The notes beneath the pieces are model-generated. The model did not search any database and was not told the DNA's origin. It saw only the letters and a program-made list of their open reading frames with translations. The position numbers and the translations under genes were made by a program. Below, piece by piece: positions 2,991-25,422 of a stretch of DNA of 64,000 nucleotides (the first letter of the stretch is position 1; the number at the start of each line of letters is the position of its first letter). Source of the DNA: Podarcis muralis (Eukaryota); the NCBI RefSeq assembly GCF_964188315.1, contig NC_135656.1, positions 107,756,001-107,820,000 of the forward strand. Reading direction: 5' to 3'.

Positions 2991-5900
2991 CTAAACTGTT
3001 CCTGAGGCATGATTTTCGCCATCTCGGGCCTCATTCTTCACATCTTTCTCCTGAACAGGTGGAATACAACCTTCTTCAGATTTCCCTGCGAAAGGAAAAA
3101 TAAACAATGGTTGGGGGAAATATCAGAAGATCAAACTCCTCTTGCAGGAGATCTGATTAGTCTCCCGGTTTTTGTTTTCCATCAAAAGCAGGCCCAAATC
3201 CTTCCACCCTGCATTCTTATGGTACTCCTCATGCCCCATTGAAGATGGTGTCCTAAGCTGCTTCACAGAAAGTTCTCTGAGGCATCCAAGGGGAGCAAGT
3301 ATTCCCTTCCCCAGCTCACATTTTTAAGAATGCTTTATCGTGGTGGCTCCTGCAGTGATGATAGCAAGGCTCCAGCCATCGTGTCTCCTGTACCAGAATG
3401 CTGTGGGAACTAAAAATAAATTTTAAAAAATGAAAAAGGAGGATGGTGAACACATGGCCCTCCAGATGTTATTGGCCTGTAATGCTCATCCTTGACCACT
3501 GTGGATGAACAGATCTGCCCATTTTGGTTCTCCCAGCTTCTCCTTTCTCTGTTCTTATAATTCAGTTCTCCACATTTCTCCAGCAATTGGCAATTTAAAA
3601 AAACAAAACTCATGAAATGTTGTGTTGCAGATAACGTAACTGTCAGGGAACTGCCATCGGCTCAAGAGGCGAGAAATAGAAGGGCAGTTGTGTTACAGGG
3701 AGCCTCCAAAAATCTTGCGAAGCAATTCCTCTTCCGTGGAGGAGGAAAGCCCCACCTCCAGTGGGGAAGAGGTGCAAGGACCAGAGGATGCTGGTGGGGG
3801 CCTTAACGCCGCTCCTGGGCAAGCCGGACAGAAGGGAAACACGCCCTTGCCCATCCTGCGCAGTAGCCTAAGGCACAAAGAGGGGAGGAGAAGGTTGGGG
3901 GTAACAAAACTCTTATGTTGGGGGAGGTCCAAAGAAAGACCACTCCCGGATTCTGCTAGCGATTGAGCCAGCTATGAGCTTCCGGGCTCTTCACTGTAAA
4001 TAGTTTGCACCAAAATAAAGCCTGTAAAACACAGGTTGGAGTCCTGCCTGGTTACTCTCGAGCAACCGCAACAGCCACCTGACAGTAACTATTCATGTGG
4101 TGGCTCTTATTTTAATGTTTGATAAGGCCTGAAGCCTGGAAAAGCCGGAGGATAAGTCAGTAAGGGAGTGGGGAGGAGAGGAGGGACCCTGGAGCACTGG
4201 GGGGACAAGATAGCTGTGGGGAGTTTGTGGAGGACCTCTGATAAGAGAAAAATGCCCCCTTTTAATAAAATCCCTTCTCCATATTTTCATCTAGCATCTA
4301 AGGGCTGTAGGTTCTCAATCCAGAGCTGGGTATCGCCATATCCTCCCTTTCCAAAGAGAGCCCTGAACTCACTTGCTTCTATTTCATTTGCTAGATGAGT
4401 GGCCAGGAAAGCACATCGTGAACCAGGTGGCGTCCATTTGTGCTGGGCTGCCTCTGTGGTAATATGGAAGACGTTCTGCTCTGTAGCATTGTAGACAGGC
4501 CACTGTTCCTCATTCGGCGCAGACCCGGTGGGATTCCTGTAGACACAACAAATAAACCAGAGCTTTATTACAGCCTCAGACTGATTTCAGGGTGAGGATC
4601 CAATGCTTGAAGTAGACAGAGCTGACATGGAAGTCAGAAGCAAGCAGTCATCCCTAGAACATTTTCAGTTCTGAAAACCACACATCTGTTACCAAATGGG
4701 AACATTTAGATTTGTATACATGGAAACGTATGTGCACATGTTGTTGTTTTTTACGATGGTTTAATGATCCAGGTTCCGCCATTTACTTATTTTTATTTAA
4801 TTAATTGGATTGTCAGATGTCAAAGCAGTTTGCAGGAACAGAATAGATATCTTAAAATGATAACATTCGGAAGTTTACAAAAAGTAATCCAAAAAATTAA
4901 AAGTATAAAAGTATAAACAAAACCAGCAGCTGAAAATATTGTTGGGATTCTGAGGGAGGGTAGCCTTGTAATTCTTGGGGTCCAAGACTTACTGGGGGGT
5001 TAATGCTGCCAGCCTCTCCATCATAGGAGCAGGTTGTATATCTATGCGTGTGTAAATAAACCGTATACAGTCATACCACGAGTTGAATGTGCTTCGGGTT
5101 GAGCGCGTTCGAGTTGCGCTCCGGGGCAACCCAGAAGTAACGCAGCGCATTACTTCCGGGTTTCACCACTCGCGCATGCGCAGACACTCAAAATGATGTC
5201 AAGTGGATGTGTGGAAGCAGCGAAACGCAACCCGCACACGTCCAGACACGCCGTCACATCTTGCCTTCCGTTCAGGATGCGAAAGGGGCTCCGGAACAGA
5301 TCCCGTTCGCATCCCCAGGTACAAGTGTATCCTAAAGACATGACAGTCTTCATCCCAAGGAAACCAAACCGAGGTGAAACCCCTGGAACCCTGAAATCTA
5401 GCAACAAGATGGTGTGCAACAAGATAATTACTTCATTTATTTTTAAAAACATATTAAAAGGCTTGTTGTTATATATGGGCTGGCATACTTAGTTCTTGGC
5501 ACAGAAAGGTTAGTACCTTACCCGCTTCTGGCAAACTCCGCCCAGTATCGCATCACTCGCCGGCTCAATTCCACCTCCGTCTCCGATGGGTCTTTCCGCA
5601 GTGACGCTGCCAAGTTTCCAAACAAGTAGGGGATCTCTGCTCCGTGGGGGGTCCCTATCCACTCTGGCCAGGGAAAGCCAGAACTGCGGTGGCTGAAGGA
5701 ATAAACATAAGATGGGCTCCCAACCTCCCTGGCCTTTGCAGCAAACTCCATCACTGGGCATAAAAAGGGATAATCTCCCAAATACTGAATCAAGGCCAAA
5801 CGGTACCGCTCTGGCCCTTGAAAGTATTCAGCATATTTAAGGGCTATAGCCCTGGCAATGTCTTCTGTTTTCAGAGTTTCCAGCACCCCTTCAAGGAGCT

Positions 5901-6972
5901 GCTCCCAGGTCAGGATCCCATCATTGACTTCAGCACTAGGAAGCATAAGGTATGCCAGGAATGATTCTTCATTAGCCATGACACCAGTAAGAATGGGTTT
6001 GCCTTGAATGCCTCTCTCCAGGAGCTTTCTGGGCTCATCAGTGAGAAATTCCCCATCTGCTGTTATTGATCTGATACCACAGAGTTCAGAAAGTGCATGG
6101 CTCTCAATTTCCTTCCCCTGTAGGCAGCTGACCATTGCACTGTGGTTAGTTTTAGGACACCCCATGAGCTGACTCAACATCGCTGATTCTCTTTCGGCAT
6201 CTTCAGGACTCCTCCAAATCCGGCGGGCAGTGGGAACTCCACTATGAAGCACACCATGGGCAACAAGGGGTTGGCTTGCCGGTGAAAGCAGGTGTAAACC
6301 AACTGAGACTGCTCCAGAACCGAGGCCAAGGAGAGTCAACCGAGCTGGATCCCCGCCAAAGACAGCTGCGTTCTCACTCACCCACTTCAGAGCCAGATGT
6401 TGGTCCCACAATGCAACATTTCCTGGGGCAGCTGGAGGCAAGTACAGGTAACCTAACATTCCTCCGCGGTAATTCATGGAGGCCACAATGACATTCTCTG
6501 TAGCAGCTAATAAGGCCCCATTTAAGACATCTGCTGAGGCTGTGTTCATGCTAAAACCCCCACCATAGATCCATAGGAGGATGGGCACTGGTGTGACTGG
6601 CCGTGGATGGGGCACCCAGATGTTGAGGAACAGGCAGTCCTCTGAAAGTGGTGTGTTTGGAGTCCATATGGGTCGATCAGGGAAGGAATCGTTATTAAAC
6701 TGAAGGCAAGAGTTGCCAAAGGTGGTGGCCTCCAAGACCTGGCTCCACGGCTGATGTGGAACCGGCTTCTGGAAACGCAGTTTGCCCATGGGGGGCTCAG
6801 CATAGGGGATGCCCAGGTAGGCGGTCACAGAGCCAGGGCCAGCCGGGAGTCTTTTGCCTCTAATAGGACCGCTGCTGGTGACCACCACAGTATCATCTTC
6901 AGAGGCAGAGCTGGAAGCCAGGAAGAGGAGGAGGAGGCAGAAGAAGGAGGGTGAAGTCCGGAAACAAGGCAT
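2991..6972 (-). CDS. Gene A: secreted cholinesterase-like protein, catalytic Ser->Gly (pseudoenzyme), 569 aa; join(6972..5522, 4536..4373, 3085..2991)
   Basis: Signal peptide MPCFR...SSSA; motifs YLGIPYAEPP, SEDCLFLNIW, YGGGF, GNVALWDQ, HGAEIPY; elbow GLGSG (GGT at 6319..6321). Donor GG|GTAAGG, acceptor ctacag|G, donor A|GTGAGT, acceptor ttcgcag|GG; frame preserved. The ORF-track N-terminal extension is intronic. Confidence 0.9.
3641..4084 (+). mobile_element. solo LTR in intron 3 of gene A
   Basis: TGTCAGG...CCTGACA termini, 5-bp TSD GTAAC (3636..3640, 4085..4089), AATAAA near 4014; absent from the matching site in C (~22778). Confidence 0.85.
4940..5406. mobile_element. old LTR-like insert in intron 2, shared by A and C
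   Basis: TG...CA ends and an aataaacc...aaagac segment also seen reversed at ~60770-60815. Missing from B, whose intron 2 is only 229 bp. TSD not clean. Confidence 0.45.
5068..5327. mobile_element. Tc1/mariner-type MITE nested in intron 2 of A
   Basis: TA-flanked, degraded cagtcatacc...ggtacaagtg ends; empty site aaccata-ta-tcctaaag in C (~23765). Confidence 0.7.
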
Positions 6973-25100: not shown

Positions 25101-25422
25101 GTGTGTTTGGAGTCCATATGGGTCGATCAGGGAAGGAATCGTTATTAAACTGAAGGCAAGAGTTGCCAAAGGTGGTGGCCTCCAAGACCTGGCTCCACGG
25201 TTGATGTGGAACCGGCTTCTGGAAACGCAGTTTGCCTATGGGGGGCTCAGCGTAGGGGATGCCCAGGTAGGCGGTGACAGAGCCAGGGCCAGCCGGGAGT
25301 CTTTTGCCTCTAATAGGACCGCTGCTGGTGACCACCACAGTATCATCTTCAGAGGCAGAGCTGGAAGCCAGGAGGAAGAGGAGGAGGCACAAGGAGGAGG
25401 GTGAAGTCCGGAAACAACGCAT
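22115..25422 (-). CDS. Gene C: secreted cholinesterase-like protein, catalytic Ser->Gly (pseudoenzyme), 569 aa; join(25422..23972, 23219..23056, 22209..22115)
   Basis: Elbow GLGSG (GGT at 24769..24771); all splice sites canonical and in frame; last exon RKSEEGCIPPVQEKDVKNDARDGENHASGTV*. Confidence 0.9.

Follow-up and report, generated by a model that had tools for sequence, protein, structure and literature searches.

Serine-less cholinesterase-like genes of lacertid lizards probably encode secreted, non-hydrolysing proteins

Why does a lizard carry three intact cholinesterase-like genes whose products lack the serine required of an active cholinesterase? The question is raised by a stretch of 64,000 nucleotides from Podarcis muralis (RefSeq assembly GCF_964188315.1, contig NC_135656.1, positions 107,756,001 to 107,820,000 of the forward strand; hereafter the window), whose minus strand bears five tandem genes of BCHE architecture, A to E, each recognizable from one open reading frame (ORF) of about 500 codons. 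We argue below that A, B, and C likely encode functional, secreted proteins of the cholinesterase fold that do not hydrolyse esters. Coding models were built with a Lacerta agilis protein as the guide, and splice junctions were read directly in the window DNA. All five models have three coding exons with GT-AG introns throughout. A, B, and C have the layout of vertebrate BCHE, with a large exon 2, an exon 3 of 164 to 167 nucleotides, and a short last exon. An earlier note, made from the letters of this DNA alone, had described 569 uninterrupted codons and canonical splice sites in each of A, B, and C, and the spliced models bear this out, with zero internal stops. Along their entire length, the models of A, B, C, and D match P. 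muralis RefSeq predictions at 100% identity, all four named “cholinesterase-like”; these gene models are not new, having already existed as automatic RefSeq predictions. Gene E served as the outgroup in the tree and codon analyses.

At the nucleophile elbow, A and C read GLGSG and B reads GLGEG, where D reads GESAG and E reads GHSAG. Direct reading of the DNA agrees with the earlier note that this position is GGT in the three genes and AGT in D; in E it is AGC. An active cholinesterase (EC 3.1.1.7 or 3.1.1.8) requires Ser in the motif G-x-S-x-G, and A, B, C, and six more lacertid genes do not have it.

These further genes place the three in a wider clade. The closest database proteins were L. 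agilis XP_032997431 (GLGSG) and two proteins of Zootoca vivipara (one GLGSG, one GLGEG), and additional members were found in P. raffonei and P. lilfordi. The clade, whose GLG[SE]G orthologs the earlier note had proposed to seek in squamate genomes, was recovered solely in genomes of Lacertini (Podarcis, Lacerta, and Zootoca). In L. agilis a single copy sits between the ortholog of D and another triad-intact paralog, F, and Zootoca carries two or more copies. P. lilfordi carries one copy of the Glu type, and a partial protein of the Ser type (P0123) has been annotated at another place in that genome. P. raffonei has three copies, one of them annotated (GLGEG). The remaining two (locus L003, 4312-8202 and 20241-24007) were not among the annotated proteins recovered: one is intact, with the elbow GSGGG and the oxyanion loop DGG, and the other, of the Ser type, has as its single defect a 20-nucleotide frameshifting insertion in exon 2. 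These copies show that the clade undergoes birth-and-death turnover. In an older P. muralis assembly, two Ser-type and two Glu-type proteins (P0130-P0134) are present; none of them matches A exactly (best identity, 94.6%), and those of the Glu type are 95.5 to 97% identical to B, which suggests copy-number variation or strongly divergent haplotypes at the P. muralis locus.

Nine intact genes of 569 to 573 codons from five species (P. muralis, P. raffonei, P. lilfordi, L. agilis, and Z. vivipara) could be compared. GGT occupies the nucleophile position in 9/9, AGT is found there in all D and F genes, and the serine-less clade, whose sister group is D plus F, is supported by 100% of bootstrap replicates in alignment columns 101 to 558 as well as in its middle and 3' segments. 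This pattern indicates a single ancestral A-to-G change (Ser to Gly), shared by common ancestry rather than chance, before Podarcis, Lacerta, and Zootoca split. Their common ancestor lies near the Lacertini crown, which has been dated to 37.6 million years (Ma) ago, with a published range of 15 to 47 Ma (PMC6733905). A fragment search with B residues 120 to 330 for partial GLG-type proteins of other lacertids returned none, and in the initial protein search nothing clustered between 90% and 68% identity; beyond Lacertini the clade may be missing or unsampled. Hence, the earlier proposal of a lizard-lineage family that arose from a BCHE-architecture esterase and was then amplified stands as regards descent, one loss of the nucleophile, and amplification, while its scope of three copies in one lizard has to give way to two trans-specific subtypes in several Lacertini species, with turnover.

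Much of the catalytic machinery besides the nucleophile is still in place. Judged by HMMER alignment to solved BChE and AChE structures and by a 15-sequence alignment, the triad acid and base, Glu335 and His443, are kept in A, B, C, and all other aligned clade members, and A, B, and C retain the GGG of the oxyanion loop, as the earlier note had said of all three elements, along with the equivalent of Trp82 (Trp103). The gorge equivalents of Phe329, Tyr332, and Trp430 are presumably retained too. For the oxyanion hole, which in cholinesterases is built from two Gly of the GGG loop and the Ala that follows the nucleophile, the picture is mixed: GGG is kept in A, B, and C, the Ala is Ser or Glu, and confidence in the structural model at 139-141 is below 50. 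Elsewhere in the clade the loop reads DGG (Praf_1, from P. raffonei) or GGA (Zootoca E). At the Trp82 position D has Phe103, and F also has no Trp; lacking this residue, D and F are probably not choline-ester specialists.

The extent of remodelling was assessed against 125 squamate and turtle relatives, with five clade members aligned. Nine positions with conservation of 85% or more across the family are altered in all five, most of them in or beside catalytic-centre motifs (Table 1). Moreover, the Glu that precedes the nucleophile is Leu in 8/9 aligned clade members and Ser in Praf_1, and Tyr at A150 is Leu in 9/9. In cholinesterase structures, the equivalent of this Tyr shares a hydrogen-bond network with the Glu before the nucleophile, and the replacement of both residues by Leu would look like a compensated change and not decay.

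Selection on the genes was examined after setting aside their 5' ends. Over alignment columns 1 to 100, i.e., the signal peptide and the first ~75 mature residues (window positions ~6972-6680, 14906-14610, 25422-25130, and 42193-41900), A, B, C, and D are nearly identical within P. muralis, and Zootoca D and F share a variant of their own. Such near-identity of paralogs within a species points to gene conversion across triad-intact and serine-less paralogs where exon 2 begins, at its 5' end, and these first 100 columns were for that reason left out of the codon models. Pairwise Nei-Gojobori ratios of nonsynonymous to synonymous substitution (dN/dS, or omega) were 0.16 to 0.47 within the clade, 0.20 to 0.49 among D orthologs, and 0.31 for F orthologs. 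In branch models fitted with our own Goldman-Yang F3x4 code, a one-ratio fit gave a log likelihood (lnL) of -7630.44 with an omega of 0.49, and a three-ratio fit gave an lnL of -7623.11 with omega values of 0.49 for the background, 1.05 for the stem of the serine-less clade, and 0.38 for its crown. A crown value of 1 was rejected (twice the lnL difference, 69.8; p = 6e-17), and so was a stem equal to the background (8.05; p = 0.0046). The genes have been under purifying selection since the serine was lost, with constraint no weaker than that in their triad-intact neighbours. On the A/B/C stem, which the earlier note had singled out for codon modelling, the ratio exceeds the background, and an approximate branch-site model A (own code, relative background branch lengths fixed) assigned an omega of 6.9 to ~7.5% of sites (twice the lnL difference, 7.9; p about 0.002-0.005), with A143 (Gly to Asn), A147 (Leu to Ala), A150 (Tyr to Leu), and A384 (Ser to Phe) as candidates. 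Positive selection on the stem is suggested by this test.

The genes are also expressed. Contigs of two public P. muralis RNA data sets (X1, study P1; X5, study P2) were compared with exon 2, intron 2, and exon 3 of B. Over the exons the k-mer depth was about 2,000 to 23,000 in X1 and 200 to 2,400 in X5, and over the 229-nucleotide intron 2 it was zero. Where one contig came to the end of exon 2, its next 30 letters were those of the start of exon 3, with one mismatch to A, two to C, and five to B; this contig is a spliced transcript of the family. Zero-mismatch contigs covered 14193-14288, the region in which B differs most from A and C and which includes GGT GAA, so the Glu type is transcribed as encoded. 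Exon 2 of A was represented in contigs of X1 and X5 as well (shares, 0.40 and 0.35). Two raw RNA runs (X21 and X19) had zero reads on B, but they were sampled at 6 to 12% with no control stretch and so are no test of silence. Genes of the clade are transcribed and correctly spliced and are abundant in some samples; the silence that the earlier note had named as evidence against function was not what the two data sets, with exon-only high depth and a splice junction, revealed.

These results bear directly on whether the genes are young unprocessed pseudogenes, or genes being lost, that still look intact. The stem dN/dS of ~1 would suit such an origin, as would the 20-nucleotide insertion in exon 2 of one P. 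raffonei copy and the variation in copy number among species and between the two P. muralis assemblies. Weighed against these are nine intact genes of 569 to 573 codons in five species whose lineages split roughly 15 to 47 Ma ago, a crown dN/dS for which neutrality is rejected, pairwise values equal to those of active neighbours, and spliced transcripts at very high depth. The earlier note had held that pseudogenes should show a dN/dS of ~1 together with frameshifted orthologs; the crown ratio is 0.38, A, B, and C have no broken frame or splice site, and the sole disrupted copy is P. raffonei copy 3. We regard decay as a highly improbable explanation.

What kind of protein is being preserved can be predicted in some detail. 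The N terminus has a hydrophobic core followed by a cleavage-type site between SSA and SEDD, and the three cholinesterase disulfides have their counterparts in the cysteine pairs 89-113, 272-283, and 405-525, with Cys298 and Cys545 as extra, clade-specific cysteines. In a search for a membrane anchor, no 19-residue window exceeded 1.52 on the Kyte-Doolittle scale, the last 30 residues were hydrophilic, and no transmembrane or glycosylphosphatidylinositol (GPI)-type tail was visible. The last exon codes for 32 hydrophilic residues that include no Trp and one Cys and are predicted to be disordered; it contains no tryptophan amphiphilic tetramerisation peptide of the type in plasma BChE and AChE-T. 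These features uphold the earlier description of A, B, and C as having a signal peptide, three disulfide pairs, and no transmembrane or GPI tail, and the product is predicted to be soluble and secreted. The Pfam family COesterase (PF00135) matched residues 27 to 526 with 420 to 430 bits. An AlphaFold model of A had a predicted template modelling (TM) score (pTM) of 0.83, with low confidence for the signal peptide and residues 543 to 569 (the disordered tail), and its best Foldseek matches were human AChE and BChE (TM score, 0.82-0.89). A, B, and C thus have the type-B carboxylesterase/cholinesterase fold.

A protein with this fold and most of a triad might still be an enzyme, with a substitute nucleophile (in A and C, the Ser that adjoins the Gly) or with a His-Glu general base acting on a different substrate. 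Most members do keep the triad Glu and His along with two of three oxyanion elements, and A and C have Ser at +1. Across the clade, however, that position is Ser, Glu, or Gly, all under constraint, which leaves no conserved nucleophile. In the elbow of alpha/beta-hydrolases, the backbone NH of the +1 residue helps to form the oxyanion hole, and the side chain of that residue faces away from the His; by this textbook geometry the Ser of A and C would point away from the catalytic base. Other positions of the catalytic centre are altered too, and the crown tree is too short for the retention of Glu and His to be significant. Continued catalysis therefore seems unlikely to us.

Alternatively, the serine-less proteins might be non-catalytic partners of the triad-intact paralogs, forming heterodimers with D or F through the four-helix-bundle interface and tuning their secretion, stability, or activity. 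Many pseudoenzymes regulate their active relatives. Exon 2 of D and exon 2 of A are represented in runs of the same three studies and in the same run, X5 (shares, 0.87 and 0.35), and the 5' 100 codons are near-identical between D and A, B, and C within a species. Co-occurrence in a pooled or unlabelled sample is weak evidence, however; the clade-specific tail Cys545, which D does not have, favours homodimers, and most of the changes fixed on the stem fall within motifs of the catalytic centre. We therefore consider such a partnership improbable, on a par with continued catalysis.

The pocket itself has diverged into two types. In segment trees, codons 131 to 262, which include the elbow, separate a Ser type from a Glu type, each spanning several genera (bootstrap, 93 and 99), whereas in the tree of the 3' segment all Podarcis copies group together (bootstrap, 100), i.e., by genus. 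Differences between A, B, and C are likewise mosaic along the coding sequence. Gene conversion has therefore made the flanks alike and left two old types in the pocket region, a pattern in keeping with selection for two distinct pockets.

The following course of events accounts for these observations. In the clade's ancestor, the catalytic Ser codon changed a single time, from AGT to GGT. The centre was rebuilt on the same stem branch: Leu replaced the Glu that precedes the nucleophile, and Ser, Glu, or Gly replaced the oxyanion Ala; past the GGG, Asn replaced Gly and Leu replaced Tyr; His replaced the Gln of the QSG motif; and Asn replaced the Asp that precedes the catalytic Glu. Purifying selection and a split into GLGSG and GLGEG pocket types common to several genera followed. 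Serine-esterase chemistry would be impossible with no nucleophile at the elbow, and because the nucleophile is missing and the centre rebuilt, we favour binding over catalysis. The products would most likely be soluble binding proteins that do not hydrolyse, perhaps dimers joined by a disulfide at the tail Cys545; a small ligand or a protein partner would be bound by the retained gorge and the protein surface with no turnover.

Several points weigh against this interpretation. Both the loss of activity and any binding function are read from sequence. A stem dN/dS near 1 is equally expected from simple relaxation, and we grade positive selection no higher than suggested because all four branch-site candidates require multi-nucleotide changes, which are known to inflate this test, here run in our own code with fixed relative branch lengths. 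Gene conversion among paralogs blurs the topology of the crown. The frameshifted copy and the GSGGG/DGG copy of P. raffonei imply that individual copies are dispensable. Support for expression is at the transcript level and comes from two data sets without a tissue label; a 2019 lacertid RNA sequencing project pooled skin, muscle, and liver (PMC6733905) and could not be linked to study P2. Finally, the femoral gland secretion proteome of L. agilis, which was searched against P. muralis UniProt entries and is the one lacertid secretion proteome examined, has no cholinesterase entry in its text or in two supplementary files, and a second femoral-gland paper has none either. The proteomic check of femoral glands raised in the earlier note came back negative, and the idea of femoral-gland secretion was dropped.

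A bolder version of the binding hypothesis is possible, and we put it forward tentatively, as distinctly less probable than the simple one: the clade would be a new class of vertebrate soluble binding proteins made by positive selection from a BCHE-like esterase, with its pocket types held apart by selection against gene conversion and each sequestering or carrying a different ligand, and the squamate cholinesterase-like expansion would have yielded such pseudoenzymes repeatedly. The ligands might be, for instance, toxins from the diet or from predators, cationic metabolites, or semiochemicals.

The repeated loss of triad residues has some precedent among relatives. Other squamate paralogs include a group with His replaced by Tyr (Pogona, Anolis, Sceloporus, Varanus, Elgaria, and Thamnophis) and sequences with Ser replaced by Asn, Asp, or Gly (Pogona, Anolis, Sceloporus, Elgaria, Gekko, and Thamnophis), and in a turtle protein Ser is replaced by Cys. 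The triad-defective relatives in our set are P0007, P0013, P0017-P0019, P0022, P0024, and P0030; P0034, P0040, P0044, P0060, P0093, P0102, and P0110; and P0103. They belong to the same gene family and reflect the same kind of event, but they sit on other branches of the tree, involve other residues, and are annotated as cholinesterase-like only. The lacertid loss is independent of these losses and more recent. If the bolder version is true, the His-to-Tyr and Ser-to-Asn groups would form, with the lacertid clade, a natural series of esterase-to-binder transitions.

The remaining features of the array lie around the genes (Table 1). Gene E may have an additional upstream coding exon at 61329-61252. 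Between C and D, an uninterrupted 1370-codon ORF with gag-like zinc-knuckle, protease, reverse-transcriptase (YFDD), RNase H, and integrase-like motifs looks like a long terminal repeat (LTR) retrotransposon, possibly intact, and the spacer between B and C holds a 286-codon ORF that resembles the C-terminal part of a reverse transcriptase of the long interspersed nuclear element (LINE) type and is read as a retroelement fragment. A short tandem 16-mer of the GGTTACATACGCTTCA type occurs 5' of A, B, and C and again 3' of A and C. It lies ~230 to 250 nucleotides upstream of the ATG in B and C and ~630 nucleotides upstream in A; the 5' end of gene C resembles that of B, and the similar spacing is consistent with a B-type 5' region in C. 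The last intron of B contains a tandem array of ~290 nucleotides with units of 8, 24, 32, and 56 nucleotides (CCGCTAAG type).

Table 1. Genes, catalytic-centre positions, and other features of the array (coordinates are those of the window; residue numbers are those of gene A)
Feature	Position	Strand	Details
Gene A, Ser subtype (GLGSG)	2991..6972	-	exons 6972-5522, 4536-4373, 3085-2991; 569 aa; XP_077781289
Gene B, Glu subtype (GLGEG)	11686..14906	-	exons 14906-13456, 13226-13063, 11780-11686; 569 aa; XP_077781288
Gene C, Ser subtype (GLGSG)	22115..25422	-	exons 25422-23972, 23219-23056, 22209-22115; 569 aa; XP_077781290
Gene D, triad-intact (GESAG)	38059..42193	-	exons 42193-40722, 39919-39753, 38126-38059; 568 aa; XP_077781294
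Gene E, triad-intact (GHSAG), more distant	53756..58358	-	exons 58358-56866, 54474-54329, 53829-53756; 570 aa from this ATG
A, nucleophile-position codon	6319..6321	-	GGT (Gly218), replacing AGT (Ser)
B, nucleophile-position codon	14253..14255	-	GGT (Gly218), then GAA (Glu219)
C, nucleophile-position codon	24769..24771	-	GGT (Gly218)
D, nucleophile codon	41540-41542	-	AGT (Ser218)
A, Trp82-equivalent codon	6664-6666		Trp103
B, Trp82-equivalent codon	14598-14600		Trp103
C, Trp82-equivalent codon	25114-25116		Trp103
D, Trp82-equivalent codon	41885-41887		Phe103
A143			Gly to Asn (segment after GGG loop)
A187			Gly to Ala
A218			Ser to Gly
A219			Ala to Ser or Glu
A237			Phe to Val
A240			Ala to Gly
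A243			Gln to His (QSG motif)
A334			Asp to Asn (adjoins catalytic Glu)
Near position 463			one-residue deletion in clade members
1370-codon ORF between C and D	27259-31371	-	looks like an LTR retrotransposon, possibly intact
286-codon ORF between B and C	15639-16499	-	predicted retroelement fragment
GGTTACATACGCTTCA-type 16-mer, 5' of A, B, C	7605-7643, 15139-15170, 25655-25693
GGTTACATACGCTTCA-type 16-mer, 3' of A, C	2607-2648, 21730-21772
CCGCTAAG-type tandem array, last intron of B	12029-12320

Non-catalytic proteins of the cholinesterase fold are known mainly as ancient membrane adhesion molecules. Here, the transition from enzyme to non-enzyme would be recent and datable, with a single founding substitution and accompanying changes in the catalytic centre, and triad-intact sister genes a few kilobases away allow direct comparison; the clade would therefore offer an experimentally tractable case of a pseudoenzyme gaining function. 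The high abundance of transcripts suggests a physiologically relevant, uncharacterised lacertid protein. There is also a consequence for ecotoxicology, in which cholinesterase activity serves as a biomarker in Podarcis: counts of “cholinesterase-like” genes would overstate the number of active enzymes. Literature searches under the accessions, under cholinesterase-like with lizard or lacertid names, and for a reptile BCHE family expansion found no description of these proteins.

Compared to vertebrate BCHE, the clade shares the fold and its best sequence match among solved structures (BChE; E value, 5e-125; ~43% identity; TM score, 0.82-0.89), as well as the signal peptide, three disulfides, the triad Glu and His, the GGG loop, and the Trp82 equivalent. 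It differs in having Gly for the nucleophile Ser, in the replacement of the Glu197 and Ala199 equivalents, and in having, instead of the tryptophan-rich tetramerisation peptide, a hydrophilic tail of 32 residues with one Cys. Its omega loop is 3 residues shorter than that of BChE, and its acyl-loop region is 10 residues shorter than that of paralog E.

Among non-hydrolysing proteins, the neuroligins have the cholinesterase fold and likewise have Gly in place of the Ser. The replacement of the nucleophile is thus shared with the clade, whereas the single-pass anchor and cytoplasmic tail are not: neuroligins, neurotactin, and gliotactin are anciently diverged type I membrane proteins, each having a stalk and cytoplasmic tail as well as a transmembrane helix, and the lacertid proteins, as recent (Lacertini) offshoots of a secreted BCHE-like gene, are distant relatives of neuroligins. 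Glutactin of Drosophila and the ChEL domain at the C terminus of thyroglobulin are secreted and serine-less, have the cholinesterase fold, and serve binding, structural, or chaperone roles. A, B, and C would work like these non-catalytic proteins, but given their recent origin and the absence of a membrane anchor or extra domains, they are not members of the neuroligin, glutactin, or ChEL families. Glutactin is an insect basement membrane protein with an acidic domain in addition, and ChEL is a domain of a giant protein, whereas the lacertid proteins are stand-alone and enzyme-sized, are encoded in a tandem array next to triad-intact paralogs, and fall into two conserved pocket types.

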